From Magallana gigas (lineage: Eukaryota): a stretch of 64,000 nt of DNA. The notes beneath the pieces are model-generated. The model was given only the letters and a program-made list of their open reading frames with translations, made no database searches and was not told the origin of the DNA. The stretch spans positions 41,788,001-41,852,000 of the forward strand of contig NC_088855.1 of the NCBI RefSeq assembly GCF_963853765.1, written 5' to 3'. Positions 35,594 to 64,000 of this stretch are shown here, in pieces (position 1 is the stretch's first letter; each line of letters begins with the position of its first letter). A program made the position numbers and the translations under genes.

Positions 35594-35629
<36 letters not shown>

Positions 35630-37900
35630 GATCAATAGGTATGATAAAATCAGCTTAATGGAGTCATAATACAAACTATCTGGACAATGTACAATAATAC
35701 ATGTAGATCCTGTATAAATAAAATCCATTTTTCTCCTGGATATTCTTATGTTTATAATCATTAGTCCCTTTTCTAACAGGATGATTTTATAGTCATATCA
35801 TATGTTGAGTATTGCAGTTCTCAAATAGATCCTTAACAATAGTTTATATATGGGATATAAACCTACATCAAACTCTGAACCTTCTTGTGAGGCCAAAGAA
35901 TTGTCCTGGGGCCAAAGTCTTAACAATTATAAAGAATCATCTGGCTGATTAGTTTCTGAGAAGAAGATTTTTAAAGATTTACTCTTTATATTCCTTTGTT
36001 AAACTTTGACCCCCCCCCCCCCCATTGTGGCCCCACCCTGCCCCTGGGGATCATGATTTTCACAACTTTGAATCTACACTACCTGAGGATGCTTTCACAC
36101 AAGTGTCAGCTTTCCTGGCTGATTAGTTTCTGAGAAGAAGATTTTTAAAGATTTACTCTATATATTCCTATGTAAAACTTCGACCCCCCCCATTGTGGCC
36201 CCACCCTACCCCTGGGGGTCATGATTTTCACAACTTTGAATCTTCACTACCTGAGGATGCTTCCACACAAGTGTCAGCTTTCCTGGCTGATTAGTTTCTG
36301 AGAAGATTTGTAAAGATTTACTCTATATATTCCTATGTAAAACTTCGACCCCCCATTGTGGCCCCACCCTCCCCCCGGGGGTCATGATTTTCACAACTTT
36401 GAATCTACACTACCTGAGGATGCTTCCACACAAGTGTCAGCTTTCCTTGCCAATTAGTTTCTGAGAAGAAAATTTGTAAAGATTTACTCTATATATTCCT
36501 ATGTAAAACTTCGACCCCCCCCATTGTGGCCCCACCCTACACCCAGGGGTCTTGATTTTCACAACTTTGAATTTACACTACCTGAGGATGCTTCCACACA
36601 AGTGTCAGCTTTCCTGGCTGATTAGTTTCTGAGAAGAAGATTTTTAAAGATTTACTCTATATATTCCTATGTAAAACTTTGCCCCCCAATTGTGGCCCCA
36701 CCCTATCCCCGGGGGTCATGATTTTCACAACTTTGAATCTACACTACCTGAGGATGCTTCCACACAAGTTTCAGCTTTCCTGGTCTAATGGTTCATGAGA
36801 AGAAGATTTTTAAAGATTTACTCTGTATATTCCTATGTAAAACTTCAACCCCCCCATTGTGGACCCATCCTACCCCCGGGGATCATGATATTCACAACTT
36901 TCTTTGTACACTACCTCAGGATGCCTTCACACAAGTTTAAGCTTTCCTGGCTGATTAGTTTCTGAGAAGAAGATTTTTAGAGATTTACTCTATATATTCA
37001 TATGTTAAACTTTGACCCCCCATTTTGGCCCCACCCTACACCCAGGGGTCATGATTTTCACAACTTGAATCTACACTACCTGACGATGCTTCCACACAAG
37101 TTTCAGCTTTGCTGGCTGATTAGTTTCTGAAAAGAAGATTTTTAAAGATTTACTCTTTATATTTCTATGTAAAACTTTGACCCCCCATTGTGGACCCACC
37201 CTACCCCTGGGGGTCATGATTTTCACAACTTTGAATCTTCACTACCTGTGGATGCTTCCACACAAGTGTCAGCTTTCCTGGCTGATTAGTTTCTGAGAAG
37301 ATTTTTAAAGATTTACTCTATATATTCCTATGTAAAACTTCGATCCCCCATTGTGGCCCCACCCTACCCCTGGGGGTCATGATTTTCACAACTTTGAATT
37401 TACACTACCTGAGGATGCTTTCACACAAGTTTCAGCTTTCCTGGCTGATTAGTTTCTGAGAAGAAGATTTGTAAAGATTTACTCTATATATTCCTATGTA
37501 AAACTTCGACCCCCCCATTGTGACCCCACCCTACCCCTGGGGGTCATGATTTTCACAACTTTGAATTTACACTACCTGAGGATGCTTCCACACAAGTGTC
37601 AGCTTTCCTGGCTGATTAGTTTCTGAGAAAAAGATTTGTAAAGATTTACTCTATATATTCCTATGTTAAATTTCGACCCCCTATTATGGCCCCACACTAC
37701 CCCTGGGGGTCATGATTTTCACAATTTTGTAACTACACTAACCTGAGGATGCTTCCACATAAGTTTCAGCTTTCCTGGTCTTATGGTTCATGAGAAGAAG
37801 ATTTTTGAAAATTTCTGGAAAATTTTCATAAATTCCTAATTATCTCCCTTTGCAAAAGGGCATGATCCTTAATTTTCACAACTTTGAATCCCCTTAGGCT

Positions 37901-37949
<49 letters not shown>

Positions 37950-38027
37950 GAAGATGTTGAAAATGTGAAAATATACAGACAGACGGACAGACAGACAGAC
38001 GAACGACAGACAAAATGTGATCAGAAT

Positions 38028-38063
<36 letters not shown>
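35594..38063 (+). mobile_element. Complete HINE/Helentron non-autonomous element with ~12 copies of a Cg170-type 166-bp satellite
   Basis: 5' AACAAGAGGCCCATGGGCCACATCGCTCACCTGAG. ~166-bp units (GGCTGATTAGTTTCTGAGAAG at ~35943, 36117, 36284 ... 37609), a (GACA/GACG)n tract, and a 3' hairpin AGCTCACTTGAGCTTTCAGCTCAGGTGAGCT whose CTCAGGTGAGC complements the 5' subTIR. The Cg170 assignment is from recalled consensus. Confidence 0.88.
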
Positions 38064-49195: not shown

Positions 49196-51865
49196 ATGGA
49201 GGAGGGCTTAGAACTGTTGGAACCTACGGAGTTGTACAATATGCTTCAGCAGGCAACGATATTTTCAAACTTGACTGATCCTAATTACCTACTTTTAATG
49301 GGTAAATAGCTTGAATTTAATTATAGTTTATTTATAATGGACTACTGCATGGTATTTGGCATTATGTTGAAACGGAATGGGACAGACAATAACAGACCAG
49401 ATTGGAATTCGAACTCGATGCCCCTTAATGTCTAGTCAAGTGCTCTGCCAACTGAGCTATCTGACATTGGCGGTTGAAACCATTCTGGCTGTCTTAAATG
49501 ATAGATCTTTACCCTCAAAGAACATCTTAGGTTTATTTTTCCAGGGGTTGGTCTCAGCACCAATGGATGGAATGATAGACATTAATGAATGGGATGTGAG
49601 ATATACTGACAGATCAGATTAATTCAAACCCTGAGGTTCCCAGAATCTCTTTTAAATTTATATATAATCATGCAGGTGCTCCATCAACTGAGCTATTTGG
49701 CTGTGTCACTAGTGATCAACCTGGTCTGATCGTCACAGTCTATCATTGAGCACTTTTTAAAATATAAATCACACGATACAACTTAGTGAACCCTACCATC
49801 TAAAATAAAATTTTATTTAATTTTAACATGCAACTTTCTCTTAAAATGGGTACAGTTTAATTTTCATTAATGAAACATGTCTCTAAAATTTCAGATGCAA
49901 GAAATAAGAATGAATACAATGAGAGTCATGTTGTTACTGCTAAAAAGGTTCCAAAGGTAAATTTTAATTTAGTAATATATGAAAAACATGGTACTATTCA
50001 TAAAAGTACATGTATCAGAAAATAGTTATTGAATTATTGTTTAATCTGGAAATTACTTACCCGGTAATTAATGTATATATTGCTGTGAAATATAAAAAGA
50101 AATTATCCAAATTTTTTATTTGCATTAGTTTTTCTGTAAATTTACATAAATTGGTTCACCTTCAGAGCATCAGATTGTTTTAGCAGTTTAAATCTGATAA
50201 CATATATATATTCAGAGAAAATTCCTTTAATTTTCACATGCAGAATGAAGAGGGATATTTTGTGGTACCCTATGATGCTGAATTAGAATGCAAACAGAAC
50301 ATTGTGGTATATGACAGCAATACATCAACACTTAGAGAACCAGAAGGTAGGCATTTTATGCAACTCTTTTATTTTTTAGATTAAAGATTTTAATTTCTTT
50401 TAAGAATACCAGTGTTGTATGTTTATAATATTCAATTGAAAATTCATGGTCTTATTATACATGTCAATTAGTTATTATGTTAATCAATGTTTATCTGAGT
50501 TTGTTTGTGGGGCATAGAAAAAAAAATTAACAAAAATATTTGAAGCAGCTTTAAATTCAGATAAATATGTTTATTACAGCTCCTGCTTTAGACTGTGGAA
50601 GAATGCTATGGGATATGGGTAGTAGAAACAAAGTAAAAATTCTCAAAGGTATGAAAATTTTGAATTTTATACATCATTTAATTCTGCACAGAGCTGGCAC
50701 ACATTTTCAGTCAGCTGATAAATTACATGTAAAAAAAAATACATGTATACCATTTTCTGTAAGCTATGATCCCATCTTTGCTCTCCAAGGATTTTCATTT
50801 CACTCCGGGACTCTGCTCCCCACAATCCTCATGTGCATACATTTTCTATTTGCACCCACATTCAAATGTAGAGCAGTTAAACAACCAGAGTAGGGGGGGA
50901 GAGTGGACCAAAAACTTTTTGGTAGCAAAGATGCTATGACCCTAATGGAGTCATTTATGTGAAATATGACTTATTAAATCGGATATCTGCTTAGTGTATA
51001 TGCTTAGAATATTAATATGTCAGGAGAGGATCAATAAATTTTCCCAGGGGGCCCAAAGGATGCTGGTAATTTTGTTTGCAAGGGGATTTGAAACAAAAGC
51101 ATATATCTGATAACTTTTCAGTGCAATAATATTAAAATACTGTAGAAGCACATATATATTTGTGGGGTTAAAATTTTGTTACTTTTACAGAAGTTTAGTT
51201 GGAATTTAATTTTGTCATATTATAATCACTTAAATGTACACCAACACATATAAACTCTGTCTTTATGAATACTTGGGTTAAAAATTGTCATGGATTTACT
51301 TTTGTTGATTAAAATAATAAAATTAAATACTCAACAAATATTTCTGCTTCTACATTTGATAATGAATTTGAGTTTTCTGGGGGTGGTGGTGAATGTGTTC
51401 CTGATTCCTCTGGATCTGCCCATGCTTCTTATGAATGGCATTTTACCCCTACAAACATTTTGACTTGGGTGTATCTTTTTCTTAAAAATATTAAATATAA
51501 TTAAATATATTAAATGCTTAAATATCTCAGAATTTTACTAAGTCCAATTGAGTCAGTGATAGTAAGTCAAGTTCCTGTTAATTACAAAGTTATGAATTTT
51601 TAATTTCATCATAAAAAAACCCTGTATAATTGTAAATTTCAAATGTTCAATGCCCATAACTATGGGTTTGTGATGAAACACAACTTGTTTAATAAAATGA
51701 ACAATGTCAAAAACATATTCAGTGAATTGTAGGCCTGGTACATAACCTTCTATATTGTACTCAATGTTTCTATCCAGATTTTCTTTCCATTTTTTAGGTG
51801 GATATGAAGAATTCTCTGCACTTTATCCATTTTTAAGAACACAAAAAATCATATTCATGCCAAAG
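49196..51865 (+). CDS. STYXL1: Serine/threonine/tyrosine-interacting-like protein 1 (MK-STYX), exons 1-5 only (rhodanese-like domain)
   Basis: Exons 49196-49301, 49895-49956, 50244-50346, 50580-50648, 51798-51865; in phase. Translation [30 protein letters not shown]...[10 protein letters not shown]...[10 protein letters not shown]...[25 protein letters not shown] matches recalled STYXL1. Phosphatase-domain exons were not found in the remaining 12 kb. Confidence 0.9.
49400..49470 (-). mobile_element. tRNA-derived SINE in STYXL1 intron 1 (second degenerate copy ~49612-49700)
   Basis: Minus strand TAGCTCAGTTGGCAGAGCA (A box) and GAGTTCGAATTCC (B box). Confidence 0.65.
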
Positions 51866-52157
51866 GTAAGTTAACTGATGAGCTTATATGATATGTTTAC
51901 TGGTAATATCTTTAAAAATTACATCAATCAAAAAATCTAATAATAGTTGGGCTATATTATATTAAAAAATACGGTTTTGAAATCAAAGCCTACAAGATCA
52001 AGTGGTAATTACATTGCTGACTGTATTACATGTACCGAAAACTTAATTTTATTGACTTCATGTAGCAATTTATTTTGTGAAAGTATACTAAGATCAGAAT
52101 ATTATCTAATTAGTGAGTTGCACATGTTGCTGCTTCATCCATAACTTTGTCAGTTCA

Positions 52158-52193
<36 letters not shown>

Positions 52194-52242
52194 ATTCTGA
52201 TCACATTTTGTCCGTCGTCCGTCTGTCCGTCCGTCTGTCCGT
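52158..52242 (-). mobile_element. 3'-terminal fragment of a HINE element, abruptly truncated
   Basis: TTTTTAGCTCACCTGAGCTGAAAGCTCAAGTGAGCTATTCTGATCACATTTTGTC is essentially identical to the reverse complement of ~38008-38063. Homology stops inside the (TCCG/TCTG)n tract. Confidence 0.85.
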
Positions 52243-52479
52243 GTCAACCATAAACGTTTATGTGGCGAAAGATTTGTCCAGGACATACTTAAGAGTTTTT
52301 CAAAATTATGAGCTTAGCTCCTAACCTTCAAACTAAAATACGTTATTTAGTTGCTTCTGAGTTTAGTAACAGATTTAGCTTCATTTAAAATTAACCACAT
52401 TATCAGAGAACTCGCTTTTTTCGGACTCCGTCGGACGCTTTTTGAAGTTGTCTCCCTTAGCACATGAAACGCAATGTGT

Positions 52480-52638
52480 ACACCAGGTCACGTGATCCTT
52501 ACATCAGTGATGACGCGACCTCTAAATATAGAATGCATGAAACGTTTTGTAAACTCTCAAGCATGTTTCTGACAAAGACAAACATCCGGTTATTTTGGCG
52601 CTAATCGGAAGGATTCAAGGATATACTATTCTGTACAG
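52480..52638 (+). promoter_or_regulatory. Putative promoter and non-coding first exon inside STYXL1 intron 5
   Basis: E-box GTCACGTGAT (52487-52496), CRE-like TGACGCGA (52511-52518), local CpG enrichment and a consensus donor CAG|GTAAGT at 52639. Confidence 0.45.
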
Positions 52639-53544
52639 GTAAGTTTTTTTCTTTGTATTTAATCAAAGCACATGTTATATATATCATCGCAAATTATTAG
52701 AATTTTTTATCGGGTTTTAAATCCATTTTGTAGGCAGTAGGATGGAATAGATATTTGTGAAAACGTGTATCTTTCGACGGGGTTAATGAAGATTAAGTAA
52801 AATTTATTCATTCCCAGATAGAACATTTTACAATATATTTTCTTACTTTTTTCATGAGCATTTTAATAAATAGAAGTTCCATATGTGTTGTCAGTTTGTC
52901 GTGGTGTCAAGTGTATTCATCTGTGATGACAAACGAGATGTAAACGAAAACCAAACACCGTTAAAATTAGGACCCAGTTGATTTTAGGACCGTCTACCAT
53001 ACATTGCATAAAATTTGAGGCACCATCAATGCTGTATAATGCACTGTTAATCCATGAATAAGCTTTTAATATCGGAACTTGCCTAGACTTTGAAAAATAC
53101 GGAAGCTTTCGCGGACAATACATATTCCAGCTAAATTTAACAAATATTTCAAAAAAGAAATAAAATATTTAAAAATAAGAAGTATATGTGAAAGCAATAT
53201 TTATTCAGGTACTGTTCATTATCTTTTGAAAGAGAAATTGCAAAATATTGAATGAATGATTCTATGTTTGATAACATGTGTACACTCAGTCACATTTATT
53301 GTCGCTGGAGGCTTCTGTGAGAAATATGCTGAATAGAAATTGTTTAGCACAGGGTTTTTATAGAAAAAAATAGAATTGTCACAATTTTGAGCATACGGTA
53401 TATGCTCAGGCACCTGAAGTTATATCTTTTTCTCATAATAAACAAAAAGTATCCTATACCTAATAATACACAAGGGAGGATGGAAATTGACATATTTGGG
53501 TCATACTTTGGGATATCCCTTTTCTGATTGGTATTCTATTGGCA

Positions 53545-55380
53545 ACTCTTAATAGATAGACATTAAAAGCTCATAACTCACAGACACAATCATAAAGTGT
53601 CTTGCTCACAACTCATAATCATTAGACATTAAAAGCACACAAGTCACAGACACATTTGGCAAATTGAAGAGTATCAAATTTTAAAAGTGCGTTGTTGAAT
53701 GTTCACAACTCATAGTCGATAGACATTAAAAGCACACAACTCAAAGACACTATCATTTATCAAAGTTCAGAATAAAATTGGAAAGTGTCTTGCTCCAAAC
53801 TCATAATCAATAGACATTAAAAGCACACAACTCATGGACACAATTATTAAACAAATTGAAGAATGCAATTTAGAAGTGCCTTATTCACAACTTGTAATAG
53901 GTAGAAATTATAAGCACATAACTCCTAGACATATTTTTTAAACAAATTGAAAATACAATACAATTTTACAAGCGTCTTTTTCAAAACTCATTAACTATAG
54001 ACACTAAAAGCCCATAATTCATGAACACAATTATATAGCAAATGTACAATACAATATTTAAATGTCCTATTGGCAACTCGTAATTGGTAGACAAAAAAAT
54101 CACACAACGCACGGACATGATCATTTATCAAAGTGAAGAATACAATTTTAAAGTGTCTTGTTCACAACTCATAATCGATAGACATTAAAAGCACACAACT
54201 CACGGACACAGTTATTTAAGAAAGTGAAGAGTGCAATTTAAATGTGTCTCGTTCACAACTCATAATCAAAAGACATTAACAGCCCATAACTTATGGACAC
54301 AATCATTTATTTAAGTGAAGAATACAATTGGAAAGTGTCTTGCTCCAAACTTAAAATCATTAGACCACATAACTCATGGACACAATTTTTTAACAATGTG
54401 AAGAATGCCATTTTAAAGTGTCTTGTTCACAACTCATAATCAATAGACACTAAAAGCACATAACTCATAGACATAGTTTTTTAAACAAATTGAAAAGCGT
54501 CTTATTTAAAACTTGTTAACGTTAGACACTAAAAGCCCATAATTCATGAACACAATTATTTAGCAAAATGTACCATACAATATTAAAATGTCCTATTGGC
54601 AAATCGCAATTGATAAATAAAAACACATAAATCACAGACATGATCATTTATCAAATTGAAGAAAACAATTTAAAAGTGTCTTGTTCACAACTCATAATCG
54701 ATAGACATTAAAAGCACACAACTCACGGACACAGTTATTTACGAAAATGAAGAATGCAATTTAAAAGTGTCTCGTTCACAACTCATAATCAAAAGACATT
54801 AAAAGCCCATAACTCACAGACATGATCATTTATCAAATTGAAAAGTTTCTTGCTCACAACTCATAATCATTAGACCACACAGCTCATGGACACAATTATT
54901 TAACAAAGTGAAGAATGCAATTTAAAAGTAATTGATAGTCTATAGAAAATAAAAGCACACAACTCATGCAAACAATCATTTATCAAAATTAAGAATGAAA
55001 TTTAAAAGTGTCTTGTTCACAACTCATAATCAATAGACACTAAAAGCACATAATTCAAAGACATAGTTTTTTAAACAAATTGAAAAACGTCTTATTTAAA
55101 ACTTGTTAACGTTAGACACTAAAAGCCCATAATTCATGAACACAATTATATAGCAAATGTACCATACAATATTAAATTATCCTGTTGGCAGCTCGTAATT
55201 AATAGACAGTAAAAGCACATAACCCACGGACATGATCATTTATTAAAATGAAGAATTCAATTTAAAAGTGTCTTGTTCACAACTCATAATCAATAGACAA
55301 TAAAAGTGTCTCAATTTTTGTTAAATGTTCACAACTCATCATAGGTAGACATTAAAAGCACATAACTCGTGAACAATTTC
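53545..55380. repeat. Degenerate ~80-95-bp tandem repeat (~20 units)
   Basis: CACAACTCATAATC..TAGACA.TAAAAGCAC recurs about every 90 bp and resumes briefly at ~55780-55830. Confidence 0.85.
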
Positions 55381-55381
55381 T

Positions 55382-55760
55382 AAAACGAGGCAATCTACTG
55401 TCAATCAAGTTGATGAAACAGGATTATCAACAGTCGCGATTGAAGTCATCATTTCGTAATTAAGTTCTATTGTCAATACAAAGACTTTGTCAGCAAATAC
55501 AATATTCCGCTAAATTAAATGCTTACTTATGTTTTTCATACATATTGCTAGGTCATTATTTATTTACCGATTTGACTTTTCATTTTACCGATCATGATGA
55601 CAAAGAGCACACGGCAGGTGTGACCGGTCAGCAGAGGATGCTTACTCCTCCATGGCACCTGATCCTACCTATAATTTTTTTAGAGGTCCGTGTTTGCTCT
55701 GCTCTTGATTTGTAATTTTCATTTTGGACTACGAGTTCAATTGTTGTTCTTTATTGTTGC
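55382..55760 (+). mobile_element. 5'-truncated Penelope-like retroelement fragment (end of RT ORF plus 3' UTR)
   Basis: Degenerate reading KRGNLLSIKLMKQDYQQSRLKSSFR.KFYCQYKDFVSKYNIPLN*MLTYVFHTYC* followed by GGTGTGACCGGTCAGCAGAGGATGCTTACTCCTCC..GGCACCTGATCC, a motif recalled from mollusc Penelope-like elements. Confidence 0.55.
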
Positions 55761-57705
55761 TTTTCATGGTAGTGTCCCATTCAGAACTCACAAACAATAG
55801 ACACTAAAAGCCCATAACACATGAACAGCAACAGACACAATTGTATTCAACAAAATGTAGAATTATGAATACATTGATAGTTTTCTTTTGTATAGAAATT
55901 TTTTTCATATCATACTTTGTAGACAAAAATTGCTATAAAAAGACACATGGACCCAGTCGTTTACAAATGCGTGTGTAATGAAGTAAATTTTAAAGCCTAT
56001 ACATTTGCAAGTTATAATTTACATTTAAAATGAAATGGATTAAAATGGATAAAATACTGCACAGATGATGTGTAAAGTCCATTGATTGTGGGGTCAACAG
56101 GAAGTGTTAAGTTACACATGGCAAAAATGGATGGAGAAACTCCTGCTGGATTTATTCTTTTTTATTCTGCATATGATTATTCCCAGGCTTGCTCATTTTG
56201 CTCAGATTTTGATATTGATGTTCTAGAGATCTTCATCAATGGTTTTTGCTGTTTAACATTTTTTTGTCTCCCAGAATTTCATGCATGTAGAGCATTTTGT
56301 GTCCTTTCTGGCTTTGCAGTAGAAAAATTCTTAAAGCTTTAATAATTATTATGAAGGTAAGTTATATTAAATAGAATAATAAACAATTATATATTTTTAT
56401 GTATTATTATAGATTTACTTATTGTGTTACAAGTTTAGCGTATATGTCATGAAGCATCAGCTTTAAGATTAGAAGACAGTAAGTTGTTGTGTTCATTCTT
56501 TTGATGGAATAATGTCCGTGTATAAAGTGATATTTGGTAACCCATGACTGAAAGGAAAGGGGTAGCCATTTTGTTAGAGACAAAAATTTTAGGATGGAGA
56601 GACGAGAAGTTTTTGTTATAGGATTGTATGTTGTTTTAAGCTTAGCATTAAGAGTTCTTGTGGTTTTTTTCAATAGCAATTCAAAATTTAGTCAGTTTGG
56701 TGTACATTTAATTTTGGGAGTTTCTTTTGTAATTGATCTGATATTCTTCATAATTGCTCTGGTGTATTTCTCCATCTGGCCAAAAAGAATTTAAGGTATG
56801 TAAAACCTCATAAGATTGTCAATCATGTCATTTAAATGAGTTTCATTAACCATATGAGGTTATAAAAGCAGGTAATGCAATATTTCAACATACTGTGAAC
56901 CAACTGTTTATAAATTATAGTGAGGTTGGTAACTCAGAATTTTGTAATTGTGTTGAATATATTATATAACGTGGAATTTCTCTTTTTAAAAATTACATAT
57001 TTGAATCTAAGTAATTTCAGTTAAATTCCCATTTTTTTGTGAGGGAGAATTGAAGTCTCCCTTGAATTTTGCTCTAAGTTGTCCCTGCCACATAAATAAA
57101 TGGACTGCTATTAAATCTTAGTCCTAAAAATGTTTGAATAAGCTGCACAATATTTCTTAATAGTAAAGTATTGAAAAGAGTTATTCATTACTCATTGAGA
57201 GCATGTTGCCAAAAATGGAGGACATAACAAATTTTCTTTGGTCTGAGGTTGCATTGTTGAGTATGATATTGTTGGTGATGATTTTCATTGTGGTGATCGG
57301 TGCAATGATTTTGAGAACTGTCAGAAAATGGAACAGAATTTTTTATTCTTGGAATGAAAGACTAATGCAGTAGACATACATTTTTTTGCATTGAACATTT
57401 AATTTCCATCTGTGGTTTGCTTTAAATATTGTCACTAAAACTGCAACTGTAACAGGTATGTATGAGTCATTAAAAATTTGACATGTTGAAGATTTGTTTA
57501 ATTAAAATAGAATGTGAAAAAATCCTTCTCATTAAAAATTCAAATAAATATTTAAAAAATATAATTAGGCAATTTATTAGGATAAATCAGAGAGAGGAGA
57601 TCAAGAGAAGTAGTTAGTACATTTTACCCAAGATAAACACATAGATTGGTTGTTTCATTGTTTTGTTTGAAAATAAAAAACTATGCTTTTGGTTTATAGG
57701 TTGCA

Positions 57706-57938
57706 ATGGGAAGGAGGAAAAGGAAACCGGCATCGGGAGATTCATGTACTGCAACTGCAAAGAAGTTAATCAAAACATGTAGTACTACTGAAACTGCAAA
57801 GAAGTTAATCAAAACTGGTGATTTTGTTTGGGCAAAACTGCCTTCAACTTCCTACCTCTGGCCTGTAAAAATAGAAAAAGTGGATATTTCAGATGATCAT
57901 GAAGAATATCATGTGTATTGTAAGGCAGATACTGTAAT
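57706..57938 (+). CDS. First coding exon of a PWWP-domain protein
   Basis: Acceptor TTATAG| at 57699, ATG at 57706, donor |GTAAGT at 57939. MGRRKRKP (NLS-like)...KTGDFVWAKLPSTSYLWPVKI fits the PWWP beta1-beta2 pattern. Candidate next exons 58593-58657 and 60715-60798; upstream UTR donor at 57456. Confidence 0.7.
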
Positions 57939-59775
57939 GTAAGTTAATTAATTTTATATAATGTTTTTATTGTAAAAGAATTTATAAATATTGTCATCTT
58001 TCTTAAATTATAGTTGGTGTAAACAAGTGTCAGAATGATAAAGCATTATATATATATTCAAATAAGGATTTGCATTAAATAACTAAATAACATTCATATT
58101 TTTGAATTTTTTTTATAAAAACAATATTTCAGCCTCCTTTTAAGGTTCTCCAATCCTCAGCCTCAAAGTATATGTTTTTCATCTTAAAAATGTTATTTAT
58201 CCTTCAAACTTTATAAATGAAATAAAAAGAAATTTTTAGGTGGTATCCATGCATTTTACAAAGTTATTGCAAATTTGCCCATGATGGATATAATGAAATA
58301 AATATACAATTTGAGGGGGGAAAAAAGGTTGTACCAGTACATCGGTGGCTCGAACCCCTTTACCTATATTTAGTAGATCTCCATTGATCCACTAAGCCAA
58401 ACATTTCGTTGAATGACTGATTGTAATACTAACACTAGAAGACTAATTAAATTTTTCTATATAAAAGGCAGATTTATGGTGCGAATTAAAAAAAAATGGA
58501 TAATTTAGAGTTATCGAACATGGCTGAGGATCGGAGATCGTTAAGGTAGTTTTGTAAAATTGAGCTAGTTTCTTTTTTGTAAAATTTCTTAGATACAAGA
58601 CCAGACAGGTAGAAATATTTCTTGAAAACATGGAGATATGGAAAGCAAAAGGAGAATGTAATGAGTTAAACATACATTTAAAATGAATTGAAATTGTTGT
58701 TTGTTTCGTTTTTTTTTTTTCAATTTGGTCATCTGAGACTGACCTATTGCTATGTTTATAAGTTCATGTCGTGCATCAATCATATTATATAGCTTAAAAA
58801 TTCATATGTGTAAGCTGCTTCTTATAATCTACAAAGCAAATATTATCATATTCATGATATTGATGTGTTACATCTTTTGACAATACTTATAGAAAACTTT
58901 ATTCCTTAAATTTATGATCCATAGGCACCAAAATTTTATGTGAAAACTTTTGATTGAATGCAGGTTTTGAATTTGTATTGGCTTCTTGCTGATTTTTAGC
59001 AGACAAACTACTGTGGTTCATCAATTTTTGTTGCATCATCAATTTCCTGGATTTTGTAAAATTAGGTTTACAAATTGCAGGTCATCGTACCTTTATGCCA
59101 ATTTTATCATATTCCTCGAGTAGTACTAGTTGTAAATGTTAAAATACAAAATAATAATAATAAAAAACTCAAATTACTAGTATAGAAACATGTCATATTT
59201 CTATATGACATGTCTATATTTCTATCTTTCTATCAAATTTGCATCTGATCCATTCTTTAATGTTTTAGACTCTGATCCAGATTTGGCAGGAAAGCTGATG
59301 ACCCTAGTGTAAATCAATATCATCCAAAAATTTCAGCTAATCTATCGGTTCAAATTATCAAAAGGCAAATTTAGACAATTATCATTATGTCTCAATAAAA
59401 GAAATTGTTTTTTATCGCAAACCTTTCATGATAACAATCAAAATGGGATGCAAATAACCAATTAGCAATTTTGTAATGGATTGTCATCCCTACTTAATGG
59501 CAGATTTATATTGTGTTTATGAATTAAGCAAAGGCATTTAGTTTTGCATTAAAAACACAATAAGAAAGTTAATTCATTGCTTTGACAATTGTATGAAAAT
59601 AAAAAGCTGAGCTAGGATATGCAAGTGATTTCAGACTACATAAATTCCTTTTTATTTAATCTGAAAATACGGTATTATACTCAGGTGACTGTTCATCATT
59701 CTTTTGTTGATTTCATATGATATTTTTGATGTGTTGGTACTAATCATTTAACATTTTAACTTACATGTCATGATC

Positions 59776-60289
59776 TTAAGGTAGTCCATCCATAACTATC
59801 ATATTTCATATCTAATAGATTGCAAGTTTGATCACTAAAATCTTAGTGTGATTTTAAGGAGTTTATTAAATAACAAAGATTCACCTTTGAAATATTAAAA
59901 AAAAATTAATATTAATAACTTTATCATATGTTGAAGTTAACATTGAAGTCTATGGGAAAAATGCATTTTTAAATATATTTCTTTAGTACAAGTAATTTTC
60001 TCACGTTTCTCTTGGTAAAAAGTTGCAAATGTGTTTCCTTTCTTCGAATATGCTAAAAACTTTCATAGTTAACCATACATATTTTAAAAATGCATTTTTT
60101 AAAATTTTCCCAAAGGGCAGACAACTCTTTTAAAAAGTTTTAAGTGCAAAAAGTTCATTTAATTGACTACATACATACAACCGAGTTTGGTTTATGTCAG
60201 CCTCATAATAGCTTTAAAATACGTTTTTGATGTAGTTTAGATCAATCAAAAGCGTTAAATTTGTCTTAGTTATGGATGGACTACCTTAA
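59776..60289. mobile_element. TTAA-flanked MITE with perfect 19-bp TIRs (Kolobok-like)
   Basis: TTAA|GGTAGTCCATCCATAACTA ... TAGTTATGGATGGACTACC|TTAA. Confidence 0.85.
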
Positions 60290-60886
60290 GGCTCAACTAA
60301 GCTTTTTTGATTAAAATCAGTCTGTTGTATGTTGTCATCATTTGCATAACAATCGTCATATACTTTTATACATCATCTTCTTCAGAACCACAGAGCCAGT
60401 TTCAAATAAACTTGGCACAAAGCATCCTTGGGACCGGGTTGAAATTTATGTTAAAGTATTCTCTGGTAGTAAACGTTTTTAAAAAAGCCGGGAAATTAGA
60501 AAAAATTTGGACTGAAAAAACAAGCTTTTGTTTTCCATTTTAAGTAGGATGTTGACCTCTATTAATGCTATTAATCTGAAGAAAAAAAATAATGGATATT
60601 GAGCTTCAAATAATTGGCTATTTAAGGAATGAACTCTCCAAAACTTTTCAGATGAGTCTTCTTCAAAATGCTTACCACATGCATGAAAGGATTCAATTGA
60701 ACTTTCAATTTCAGATATTTTGCGGAAAAAAAATGCAACATTGCAAGCATTTCAAAACGATGTCAAGTGGGCCTTGGAATCTATAGAAGCACAACCAGTT
60801 GAGAATTCTGACTATGCTAACTAGGGCAATAGTTGTCGGAAATTGATATCTGATGAAGATGACTCGGTTTATATTTTCTTCTGTAG

Positions 60887-63800
60887 GCGATCACCCTCAT
60901 CAGTTAGATGTAGTAGAGTTTAATGGCAGAGAGTCATATAAAGGATCTGGTTCTGTTGATGCAGTGATTGAGTCTGTCCTTGAAGATGCATATGCAGGTG
61001 AGATATCTGACTATGCTAACTGAGGCAATAGTTGTTGGATATTGATATCTGATGAAGGTGACTCGGTTTATATCTTCTTCTGTAGGTGACCACCCTCATC
61101 AGTTAGATGTAGTAGAGTTTAATGGCAGAAAGTCATATAAAGGATCTGGTTCTGTTGATGCAGTGATTGAGTCTGTCCTTGAAGATGCACATGCAGGTGA
61201 GATATCTGACTATGCTAACTGAAGCAATAGTTGTTGGATATTGATATCTGATGAAGATGACTCGGTTTATATTTTCTTCTGTAGGCGATCACCCTCATCA
61301 GTTAGATGTAGTAGAGTTTAATGGCAGAGAGTCATATAAAGGATCTGGTTCTGTTGATGCAGTGATTGAGTCTGTCCTTGAAGATGCACATGCAGGTGAG
61401 ATATCTTACTATGCTAACTGAAGCAATAGTTGTTGGATATTGATATCTGATGAAGATGACTCGGTTTATATCTTCTTCTGTAGGTGACCACCCTCATCAG
61501 TTAGATGTAGTAGAGTTTAATGGCAGAGAGTCATATAAAGGATCTGGTTCTGTTGATGCAGTGATTGAGTCTGTCCTTGAAGATGCACATGCAGGTGAGA
61601 TATCTGACTATGCTAACTGAGGCAATAGTTGTTGGATATTGATATCTGATGAAGATGACTCGGTTTATATTTTCTTCTGTAGGTGACCACCCTCATCAGT
61701 CAGATGTAGAGTTTAATGATGGAGAGTCGGATGAAGGATTGGGTTCTGTTGATGCAGTGATTGAGTCTGTCCTTGAAGATGCACATGCAGGTGAGATATC
61801 TTACTTTGCTAACTGAGGCAATAGCTGTTGGAAATTGATATCTGATGAAGATGACTCTGTTTATATCTTCTTCTGTAGGTGCCCAATCTCATCAGTCAGC
61901 TGTAGAGTTAAATGGTGGAGAGTCAGATAAAGGATCCAGTTCTGTTGATGCAGTGATTGAGTCTCTTCTTGAAGATGCACAAAATGAAGAGTCAGATAAA
62001 GGATCACATGCAGGTGAGATTTCTGACTATGCCAACTAGTGCAATAGTTGATAGAATTTGATATCTGATGAAGATGACTGTTTATATTTTCTTCTGTAGG
62101 TGACCACCCTCATCAGTCGGATGTAGAGTTTAATGATGGAGAGTCGGATGAAGGATTGGGTTCTGTTGATGCAGTGATTGAGTCTGTCCTTGAAGATGCA
62201 CATGCAGGTGAGATATCTTACTATGCTAACTGAAGCAATAGTTGTTGCCTTGTTGGATATTGATATCTGATGAAGATGACTCTGTTTATATCTTCTTCTG
62301 TAGGTGACCACCCTCATCAGTCAGATGTAGTAGAGTTTAATGGCAGAGAGTCATATAAAGGATCTGGTTCTGTTGATGCAGTGATTGAGTCTGTCCTTGA
62401 AGATGAACATGCAGGTGAGATATCTTACTATGCTAACTAGGGCAATAATTGTTGGATATTGATATCTGGTGAAGATGACTGTGTTTATATCTTCTTCTGT
62501 AGGTGACCACCCTCATCAGTCAGATGTAGAGTTTAATGATGGAGAGTCGGATGAAGGATTGGGTTCTGTTGATGCAATGATTGAGTCTCTTCTTGAAGAT
62601 GCACATGCAGGTGAGATATCTTACTTTGCTAACTGAGGCAATAGCTGTTGGAAATTGATATCTGATGAAGATGACTCTGTTTATATCTTCTTCTGTAGGT
62701 GCCCAATCTCATCAGTCAGCTGTAGAGTTAAATGGCGGAGAGTCAGATAAAGGATCCAGTTCTGTTGATGCAGTGATTGAGTCTCTTCTTGAAGATGCAC
62801 AAAATGAAGAGTCAGATAAAGGATCACAAGCAGGTGAGAATTCTGACTGCCAACTAATGCAATAGTTGACAGAATTTGATATCTTATGAAGATGACTCTG
62901 TTTATATCTTCTTCTGTAGGTGACCAATCTCATCAGTCAGATGTAGAGTTTAATGATGGAGAGTCGGATGAAGGATTGGGTTCTGTTGATGCAGTGATTG
63001 AGTCTGTCCTTGAAGATGCACATGCAGGTGAGATATCTTACTTTGCTAACTGAAGCAATAGTTGTTGGATATTGATATCTGATGAAGATGACTCTGTTTA
63101 TATCGTCTTCTGTAGGTGACCACCCTCATCAGTCAGATGTAGAGTTTAATTTTGGAGAGGCAGATAAAGGATCTGGTTTTGTTGATGCAGTGATTGAGTC
63201 TCTTCTTGAAGATGAACATGCAGGTGAGATATCTTACTATGCTAACTAGGGCAATAGTTGTTGGAAATTGATATCTGATGAAGATGACTTTGTTTATATT
63301 TTCTTCTGTAGGTGCCCAATCTCATCAGTCAGCTGTAGAGTTAAATGGCAGAGAGTCAGATAAAGGATCCAGTTCTGTTGATGCAGTGATTGAGTCTCTT
63401 CTTGAAGATGCACAAAATGAAGAGTCAGATAAAGGATCACATGCAGGTGAGATATCTGACTATGCTAACTGAGGCAATAGTTGTTGGATATTGATATCTG
63501 ATGAAGATGACTCTGTTTATATTTTCTTCTGTAGGTGACCACCCTCATCAGTCAGATGAAGAGTTTAATGATGGAGAGTCGGATGAAGGATCTGGTTCTG
63601 TTGATGCAGTGATTGAGTCTGTCCTTGAAGATGAACATGCAGGTGAGATATCTTACTATGCTAACTGAGGCAAAAGTTGTTTGAAATTGATATCTGATGA
63701 AGATGACTCTGTTTATATCTTCTTCTGTAGGTGACCACCCTCATCAGTCAGATGTAGAGTTTAATTTTGGAGAGGCAGATAAAGGATCCAGTTGTGTTGA

Positions 63801-64000
63801 TGCAGTGATTGAGTCTCTTCTTGAAGATGAACATGCAGGTGAGATATCTGACTATGCTAACTGAGGCAATAGTTGATTGAAATTGATATCTGATGAAGAT
63901 GACTATTTATATCTTCTTCTGTAGGCGATCACCCTCATCAGTCGGATGTAGAGTTTATTGACGCAGAATCAGATAAAGGATCTGGTTCTGTTGATGCAGT
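60887..64000 (+). CDS. Array of >=16 tandem symmetric (phase 1-1) exons encoding an acidic 36-45-aa repeat
   Basis: Exons 60887-60997, 61086-61196, 61285-61395, 61484-61594, 61683-61790, 61879-62013, 62100-62207, 62304-62414, 62503-62610, 62699-62833, 62920-63027, 63116-63223, 63312-63446, 63535-63642, 63731-63838, 63925-end. Each has TTCTGTAG| and |GTGAG. Peptide e.g. GDHPHQSDVEFNDGESDEGLGSVDAVIESVLEDAHA. Linkage to the PWWP exon is inferred. Confidence 0.75.

Follow-up and report, generated by a model that had tools for sequence, protein, structure and literature searches.

What separates exons 5 and 6 of the gene STYXL1 in the oyster Magallana gigas, and does the second transcription unit that lies there on the same strand belong to the host or to a mobile element? 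The question is raised by a stretch of 64,000 nucleotides of the 564-Mb genome (G000:C3:41788001-41852000, hereafter the window), in which a previous sequence-only reading had followed STYXL1 up to exon 5 and had placed behind it a broken HINE transposon, a promoter, two splice donors, a PWWP exon and an array of further exons, one of its interpretations being a large mobile insertion with a chromatin-reader gene as cargo. All positions are given in window coordinates, which were extended past 64000 (L005, 64001-74000; L006, 74001-84000; L007-L009, up to 114000). The object is a nested transposon insertion within an intact STYXL1, in which a HINE is split by a 27.4-kb element with a putative recombinase gene of its own. 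The earlier observation is partly confirmed and its interpretation partly supported, the mobile-element reading being right in outline, and the main interest of the locus lies in the apparent targeting of HINE microsatellites by the inner element.

STYXL1 and the insert in its fifth intron

STYXL1 is complete, with exons 6-8 located after the insert, and is spliced across the whole 30 kb. The relevant parts of the gene are the following.

51797-51865 (start approximate), plus strand: STYXL1 exon 5, last rhodanese-region exon ahead of the insert, donor AAG/GTAAGT
51866-64000 and on to extended position 83106, plus strand: STYXL1 intron 5, 31.2 kb, including the 30.3-kb nested transposon insert
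83107-83256 (L006:9107-9256), plus strand: STYXL1 exon 6, EMDDNLKPYPTEIMPGFLYLG..., from a motif scan to the right of the window
83626-83952 (L006:9626-9952), plus strand: STYXL1 DSPc exon with the motif VLVFSNLGISRS, from the motif scan; Pfam DSPc E=1.4e-10
extended ~84252-84380, plus strand: STYXL1 C-terminal exon, downstream of the DSPc exon

As previously described, exon 5 ends with ...KIIFMPK at 51865, followed by the donor GTAAGT, and no phosphatase exon is present between 51866 and 64000. Exon 6 starts at 83107, 0.6 kb past the end of the insert, and extension of the sequence to the right located there the exon 6 string that the earlier reading had predicted (EMDDNLKPYPTEI). In fact, in contigs from two RNA runs (X15 and X20) exon 5 continues directly, after 51866, into AAATGGATGACAACCTGAAGCCCTACCCTA, a string that is unique in the extended region and lies at 83108 (L006:9108) behind an AG acceptor; intron 5 is therefore 31.2 kb long and is removed normally. 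The DSPc domain, which carries a serine in place of the catalytic cysteine (VLVFSNLGISRS) as in STYXL1/MK-STYX, is found 3' of the rhodanese-type region, whose exons were identified by eye only. Neither the RNA contigs nor the read mapping, which covered 51801-57800 with a threshold of three reads for a spliced joint, displayed any connection between exon 5 and the element. Accordingly, the truncated STYXL1 and the STYXL1-PWWP read-through that had been put forward as alternatives are both refuted by the exons 6-8, with their DSPc domain, beyond the insert and by the RNA contigs that join exon 5 to exon 6.

Comparison with other copies shows that intron 5 holds a complete Cg_HINE, a non-autonomous Helentron-type rolling-circle element, from 52158 to ~82500, with a second element inside it.

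52158-52242, plus strand: 5' (left) flank of the complete Cg_HINE, with a T-run, the subterminal repeat GCTCACCTGAGC, its internal complement and a (GTCY)n microsatellite at ~52209-52242
52243-64000, the left 11.8 kb of 52243 to ~79672 (end L006:5672), plus strand: recombinase element, GTCAACCATAAACG ... CTAAAGTTA, with (GTCY)n on both sides
extended 79673-80900, plus strand: HINE body, from comparison with ordinary HINEs
extended 80909-82155, plus strand: HINE 166-bp satellite repeats, from the same comparison
extended 82156-82500 (end ~L006:8500), plus strand: HINE 3' end segment, which terminates in ...CTCAGGTGAGCGATGTGGCCCATGGGCCTCTTGTT
35596-38058, minus strand: ordinary Cg_HINE without the inserted element, 14 kb upstream of the STYXL1 insert
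extended 106209-107164, minus strand: ordinary Cg_HINE without the inserted element, 24 kb downstream of the STYXL1 insert

The published layout of Cg_HINE comprises a 5' subterminal inverted repeat (subTIR) with an internal complement, a GTCY microsatellite, Cg170-like central repeats, a 3' subTIR with a palindrome, and a T-rich target without duplication (PMC7492417). All of these modules are found between 52158 and ~82500, including the 5' subTIR GCTCACCTGAGC, the string CTCAGGTGAGC near the 3' end, the palindrome GGCCCATGGGCC, the 166-bp repeats and the insertion flanks ...TTCA/TTTTT and ...TTGTT/ATTTTT, which are T-rich and show no target duplication. The difference is that the published elements measure ~1-3 kb and contain tandem repeats only (PMC7492417), whereas this one is split at its microsatellite by the 27.4-kb recombinase element. 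In ordinary HINEs the 82-bp 5' end with (GTCY)n is followed by AAACTTTTTACATTTTGAAC..., the 166-bp tandem repeats and the 3' end. Identity of the left flank in intron 5 to two further HINEs in the vicinity of the window amounts to 94-97%; against the 5' end of the HINE at 35596-38058 (minus strand), the segment 52158-52239 shows 93.9% identity, and homology stops at (GTCY)n, at 52242. The match to the end at 38063 that had been noticed is thus real, as is its abrupt end at 52242, but the two sequences are not nearly identical. Nor is the HINE broken: it is whole, split by a second, independently mobile element, and its missing end was found to the right, where the predicted terminus ...GGGCCTCTTGTT lies at ~82500.

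From 52158 onwards the window is not unique DNA. Copies were located with an 801-bp probe (57200-58000, the region of the PWWP-like exon), which matches at ~100% at four places, and by alignment of 50-kb stretches per locus, which delimited a shared block from 52158 to ~82500. The inner element is present in four genome copies, 98.9-99.7% identical, at C3 (the window), C5:5.18-5.21 Mb, C7:40.10 Mb and C5:25.56-25.59 Mb, that is, on three chromosomes and between unrelated outer flanks. These four near-identical copies at unrelated loci bear out the proposal of a large mobile insertion that carried its own gene into the intron. Three copies whose flanks are unrelated share an identical left end of the HINE, TTTTTAGCTCACCTGAGCTGAAAGCTCAAGTGAGC..., and its first 60 bp are identical among the C5 copy, the C7 copy and one cargo-less HINE, likewise with unrelated flanks. 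Mis-assembly or haplotig duplication is ruled out by the differing flanks, the private nested insertions and the unequal cassette numbers of the four copies.

The gene of the element and its protein

The element contains a single long, intron-rich gene, which is transcribed and spliced. Its parts are listed below; those past the cassette array are exons of L030, a spliced public contig of 2,491 bp whose eight exons match the genome at 98-100% from 64707 to the stop at 76136.

56421-57938 (true start at or before 56421), plus strand: first exon as seen, with short upstream open reading frames (ORFs) and a PWWP-like ORF from ATG 57706; donor AT/GTAAGT after 57938
60715-60798, plus strand: exon 2, conserved frame ILRKKNATLQAFQNDVKWALESIEAQP; RNA-type contigs join 57938/60715 and 60798/60885, and the frame is kept with the homologue P0004
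60887-64000, last cassette at extended 64511-64618, plus strand: cassette-exon array, 19 cassettes with acidic repeats GDHPHQSDVEFNDGESD...VDAVIESVLEDAHA
64707-66255, plus strand: L030 exon 1, spliced contig match
68256-68379, plus strand: L030 exon 2, spliced contig match
70432-70558, plus strand: L030 exon 3, spliced contig match
72239-72357, plus strand: L030 exon 4, spliced contig match
72876-73071, plus strand: L030 exon 5, spliced contig match
75538-75636, plus strand: L030 exon 6, spliced contig match
75718-75774, plus strand: L030 exon 7, spliced contig match
75943-76136 (stop), plus strand: L030 exon 8, spliced contig match

Two contigs from different runs (L031 and L032) are colinear with the genome, without gaps, over 56421-57938 and 56940-57938, respectively, then jump to 60715 and continue, spliced, into the first cassette; the donor previously proposed at 57456 is therefore unused. 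Over 56400-57800 the poly(A) reads reach a depth of ~1-4.5 and are nearly all of one orientation, which in a standard stranded library indicates plus-strand RNA. At the three-read threshold the mapping gave no spliced joints within the element and no usable start site. The contig ends near 56411-56421 fall in a segment (56338-56823) with at least one other 97% copy on C1, and thus probably reflect breaks in the assembly and not the start of transcription. As for the donor suggested at 52639, it has no spliced RNA support, and contigs from RNA runs pass straight across it; such contigs span introns too, and on their own are no proof of transcription.

The exon array that had been described is real and extends beyond the end of the window. 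Its cassettes measure 108, 111 or 135 nt at a period of ~196 bp, are all of phase 1-1 and all open, and are followed by a 1.55-kb recombinase exon. Cassette acceptors number 20, 18, 23 and 16 in the four copies, and the array appears to expand and contract like a satellite. Within the recombinase exon, a 528-codon ORF (64673-66259) ends at the donor ...GCTTTAAG/GTAATA, and further exons were found by tblastn with full-length family members. Joining of the L030 exons gives an uninterrupted frame of 821 codons in three copies, which differ by 2-3 amino acids, and the fourth copy carries an in-frame deletion of 162 bp. ORF inspection revealed no other long ORF in the 27 kb; decayed reverse-transcriptase fragments were not searched with profiles.

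Based on a structural model, the gene is predicted to encode a zinc-finger and tyrosine-recombinase protein of a large eukaryotic family for which there is no Pfam model. When all exon-sized pieces and nine full-length homologues were scanned with Pfam, there was no recombinase, PWWP or other domain above threshold, and a PDB profile search by sequence returned only a zinc finger (E=0.21). Since sequence searches gave no recombinase, the link to this enzyme class was made through structure alone. The AlphaFold model of P0043, an intron-less relative of 651 residues, has a mean predicted local distance difference test (pLDDT) score of 80, and nearly everything that Foldseek matched to it is a tyrosine recombinase or a type IB topoisomerase. 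Upon realignment the Z scores were 11.8 for XerA, 11.3 for XerH, 10.0 for integron integrase, 9-9.5 for Cre and 9.1 for lambda Int, with topoisomerase IB also among the matches at Z 9-11.8; the alignment spans residues ~210-645, which correspond to the core-binding and catalytic domains. At the level of motifs, RRPGELEAL, EVRGKTGKRVPV, TNLRKHCAT and LGHTQKVHAIHY of the window protein would match the arginine, lysine, arginine, histidine and tyrosine of the family, so that of the catalytic set the two arginines (in RRPGELEAL and NLRKH) and the histidine and tyrosine of LGHTQKVHAIHY are present, and the first histidine, that of HxxR, is replaced by T. The N-terminal part contains two conserved Cys/His clusters.

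In the protein library the 528-codon ORF has relatives in 2,943 cluster representatives, which the Atlas labels as unnamed eukaryotic proteins of chordates, arthropods, cnidarians and molluscs. The oyster genome itself holds at least 49 recombinase matches with 24-52% identity, ~21 of them on C1:54-65 Mb, and intron-less ORFs of ~638 codons occur in identical-scoring groups at at least 10 loci. Such numbers indicate a transposon family rather than a host gene. Concerning the PWWP exon of the earlier reading, the ORF from ATG 57706 does exist, but the domain remains below the Pfam cut-off (PF00855, E=0.084, 13.8 bits against a gathering threshold of 25.6, over profile positions 1-23 only). The supposed cargo gene for a chromatin reader is rejected: the gene is the element's own tyrosine-recombinase gene, behind a PWWP-like start that is out of frame by one nucleotide. 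In its conserved frame exon 2 resembles the missing C-terminal part of a PWWP domain, and the two PWWP-like halves may once have been in frame. A contig of a relative (L029) has the same exon order but lacks a GTCY tract and, over 3.3 kb upstream, a PWWP-like exon.

Insertion into HINE microsatellites

The copies at C3, C5:5.18-5.21 Mb and C7:40.10 Mb lie in three different Cg170-type HINEs, and the fourth, at C5:25.56-25.59 Mb, lies in an unrelated HINE-like family with the 5' end ...TATACCCCCGCTCCGAAGGAGAGGGGGTATACTGTTTTACCC... and a body that starts with AACAAAAATTTCTGTCGC..., of which at least 40 copies exist at 99% identity. In five empty copies of this family the (GTCY)n tract is unbroken exactly at the position of the cargo. 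All four junctions read (GTCY)n/GTCAACCATAAA...CTAAAGTTA/(GTCY)n, in a single orientation. When the two ends of the element were compared in both orientations, no terminal inverted or long direct repeats beyond chance were found; a 14-bp palindrome (CATAAACGTTTATG) is located at the left edge. Even with such tracts taken as 1% of the genome, the chance of four insertions out of four falling in them would, by our own estimate, be ~1e-8.

The cargo and its surroundings also differ in age. Among the HINE-borne copies the cargo is 99.65-99.67% identical (4.6-kb unique stretch, 11-13 mismatches), whereas the 360 bp of HINE body that abut it are 95.0-95.8% identical among cargo-bearing copies, against 94.1-94.7% to a cargo-less HINE; divergence between copies is thus 4.4% in the HINE body and 0.26% in the cargo, a ~17-fold difference. 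Likewise, the HINE backbones differ in the number of satellite monomers and in nested insertions. Since the cargo is far more alike than the flanking HINE body, it is younger than the HINE around it, and four separate, recent insertions of a 27-kb element into older repeats would be the simplest account of these comparisons.

We hypothesize, and consider it probable, that this is a site-specific transposon of Crypton-like type, with HINE microsatellites as its target. A family recombinase, supplied by these copies or in trans, would recombine a microsatellite-bearing site of the element with (GTCY)n in HINE-type repeats, likely by way of a circular intermediate, and such recombination would leave the repeat on both sides and allow a single insertion orientation. 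The HINE microsatellites would then serve as landing pads on which the element settled recently, four times and independently; STYXL1 would have received one of these copies, with the "nested same-strand gene" as a by-product. On a broader view, which could equally well prove right or wrong, an undescribed lineage of eukaryotic tyrosine-recombinase transposons would use the (GTCY)n of HINE repeats, with their thousands of copies, as an attachment site and as safe landing pads, and its gene would have turned a satellite-like repeat into a cassette-exon array of variable copy number.

Several observations weigh against targeted insertion by such a transposon. The case is built on genome copies, with transposition, excision and a circular junction not observed, and four insertions are a small sample. 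As to the enzyme, none of 26 family members gave a Pfam recombinase match even at E<=1 (DUF3504, DUF3435, Phage_integrase), and the histidine of HxxR is T in the window protein and N or I in its relatives, catalytic competence being a prediction only. Translation is a further difficulty. The PWWP-like ORF of exon 1 ends in phase 2 and the conserved frame of exon 2 (ILRKKNATLQAFQNDVKWALESIEAQP) needs phase 1, so that in the four copies and in two RNA contigs the frames of the former and of the recombinase ORF are offset by one nucleotide; owing to this mismatch the spliced RNA encodes an ORF of 117 residues that stops in the first cassette (P0164). The recombinase frame has a TAA at 57935-57937, and the first ATG in its 1,570 codons falls in the ninth cassette, as is the case in all four copies. 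An upstream exon with an in-frame start would have to fit phase 1 and keep its frame open, which holds for none of the donors at 52639, 56358, 57456 and 57938. In addition, the exon 2 donor of the window copy is TT (G to T at 60799) and that of the other three copies is GT; the window copy is probably poorly spliced at this exon. It is therefore doubtful that these copies produce their own recombinase, and the enzyme may possibly be provided by relatives. Finally, the first ~550 bp of the element are also found at three loci on C1, at 58.0, 61.0 and 63.1 Mb (L025:5630-6400, L026:4877-5620 and L027 reverse 4502-5150), preceded by the microsatellite and by a HINE 5' end in which 7 bp are duplicated. 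At these loci the segment includes a GTAAGT donor equivalent to that at 52639, downstream of which stand an acceptor and a short, unrelated ORF; a recombinase is absent within 4 kb, and the outer flank is common to L025 and L026. This arrangement, in which other sequence follows the left 550 bp, fits no explanation offered here.

The doubts about translation, with the frame break and a long leader that contains upstream ORFs, speak for a passive spread of the segment without the recombinase, in which ectopic recombination or gene conversion would start from the (GTCY)n common to HINE-type repeats; in every copy the microsatellite is present on both sides, which suffices for repair-based copying. 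We regard such a spread as unlikely, because two exchanges in repeats of ~20-40 bp, on either side of 27 kb of heterologous sequence, would have been needed on four occasions, invariably with one orientation and clean junctions; the block of high identity never reaches into the host repeats and the segment encodes exactly the type of enzyme that makes such junctions. A single capture of the 27-kb segment by a Cg_HINE, with the composite then copied as a unit by Helentron rolling-circle transposition, is very unlikely. In three of the four copies the HINE 5' end is indeed shared, the body, satellite and 3' end of a HINE come further on, the flanks are T-rich and the target is not duplicated, and gene capture is known for Helitron-type elements (PMC7492417). 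However, a composite that moved as a unit is contradicted by the ~17-fold greater divergence of the HINE body, which is no closer among cargo-bearing HINEs than to the cargo-less one, and by the unequal monomer numbers and nested insertions of the backbones, and the fourth copy, which has neither of the two ends of this HINE family, is embedded in the microsatellite of another element. An ordinary or domesticated chromatin-reader gene of the host nested in the intron, or a STYXL1 that is truncated or reads through, is hardly credible, since the same strand, the transcription and the weak PWWP-like start stand against four near-identical copies at unrelated loci, a multi-copy protein family and a STYXL1 whose RNA passes from exon 5 to exon 6 with no link to the element.

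Related systems and minor repeats

Cryptons are typically a few kb long, far below the 27 kb of the present element, and their model was reportedly put forward by Goodwin in 2003. They are defined operationally and do not form one lineage, an example being CryptonF-1_cRei, and for integration they recombine with a short target whose sequence equals that of their own end (PMC3212892; PMC9977147; PMC13465315); activity of this type has been demonstrated in Chlamydomonas (PMC9977147). The element of M. gigas resembles them in encoding, to judge from structure, a tyrosine recombinase, in having no reverse transcriptase, long terminal repeats or terminal inverted repeats (TIRs), and in being flanked at both ends by a short direct repeat equal to its target. 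Operationally, the element is a Crypton. It differs in a recombinase that matches neither the profiles of known Cryptons (DUF3504, GCR1_C-linked) nor Phage_integrase, so that by profile matches the 26 family members would fall outside described clades such as the DUF3504 clade of CryptonA, in a size of 27 kb that stems from ~28 exons and many nested repeats, and in a target that is a tetranucleotide microsatellite inside another transposon instead of a motif of 4-6 bp.

A precedent in architecture is MarCry-1_FO, a Crypton fused into a Mariner, in which a recombinase element is likewise nested in a DNA transposon and the evidence likewise consists of four copies more than 97% alike; the MarCry copies share Mariner TIRs and TA duplications and were moved as a unit by the Mariner transposase (PMC3212892). 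In contrast, the HINE parts around the present element are of greater age and not alike from copy to copy, which indicates that the inner element moved by itself. Endogenous nimaviruses are also large elements that insert specifically into simple repeats of the host, such as (TAACC)n or microsatellites, and their tyrosine recombinases possess a C2H2 zinc-binding region, a SAM-like N-domain and part of the canonical catalytic residues (PMC10871703). They are viral genomes of many genes, whereas the present element has one gene and no viral genes, and the likeness drawn here is one of features. The Starships of fungi share with it a very large size, a tyrosine recombinase at one end and a site preference, but their captains belong to DUF3435 and they carry real cargo genes (PMC10104507), whereas this element has no DUF3435 match and consists mostly of introns and nested repeats.

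For annotation, these results remove a false lead, given that STYXL1 is intact and the nested "chromatin-reader gene" is the gene of a four-copy transposon, and they document an intronic insert of 30 kb that is spliced out cleanly. They also amount to a clean natural experiment: two Helentron-type families that are not related carry one and the same 27-kb element in the same microsatellite, and these host repeats are ~17 times more diverged than the element. Repeat-specific integration in an animal, by a tyrosine recombinase, is what this pattern points to. With thousands of clusters and no Pfam profile, the family of this enzyme probably goes unrecognized, or bears a wrong label, in most annotated genomes. 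Provided that the targeting is true, the enzyme and its site would form a candidate system for sequence-specific integration.

Three further repeats lie in the part of the element that falls within the window.

52472-52535, no strand assigned: 64-bp dispersed repeat with the "E-box/CRE" motifs, at least 35 dispersed copies in the genome
53500-55400, no strand assigned: satellite-like array of ~83-91-bp repeats (Tandem Repeats Finder: 53700-54494, 54285-54448 and 54618-54842)
59776-60290, no strand assigned: repeat resembling a miniature inverted-repeat transposable element (MITE), with TIRs (CCTTAAGGTAGTCCATCC...), nested in intron 1 of the element's gene

The promoter that had been proposed from E-box and cAMP response element (CRE) motifs is not upheld, since these motifs belong to the 64-bp repeat, which is missing from the C1 paralogues of the segment and from one DNA contig that skips 52463-52535. 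The array at 53500-55400 lies inside the block aligned between copies, i.e. within the element, and the MITE-like repeat has dozens of copies genome-wide, 89-92% identical. Just 5' of the HINE, one DNA contig (run X6) skips 221 bp (51936-52158) with a short-side support of 21 nt, which may correspond to a polymorphic deletion or to an artefact. The family that hosts the fourth copy, seen at G000:C5:25563080-25563286 and at no fewer than 40 other loci (L033-L038), is a young HINE-like family with a hairpin 5' end (CCCCCGCTCCGAAGGAGAGGGGG), a GTCY microsatellite and internal repeats of ~167-190 bp. Private to the window copy are a 1.1-kb element with inverted ends (AACCCTTAGGCTGCTG...) at L005:3027-4137 (extended 67027-68137) and a 1.4-kb foldback-like segment at extended 76603-78030, and the other copies have private insertions of their own, of 1-4.6 kb. 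Much transposon traffic has followed the separation of the copies, at a divergence of merely ~0.3%.

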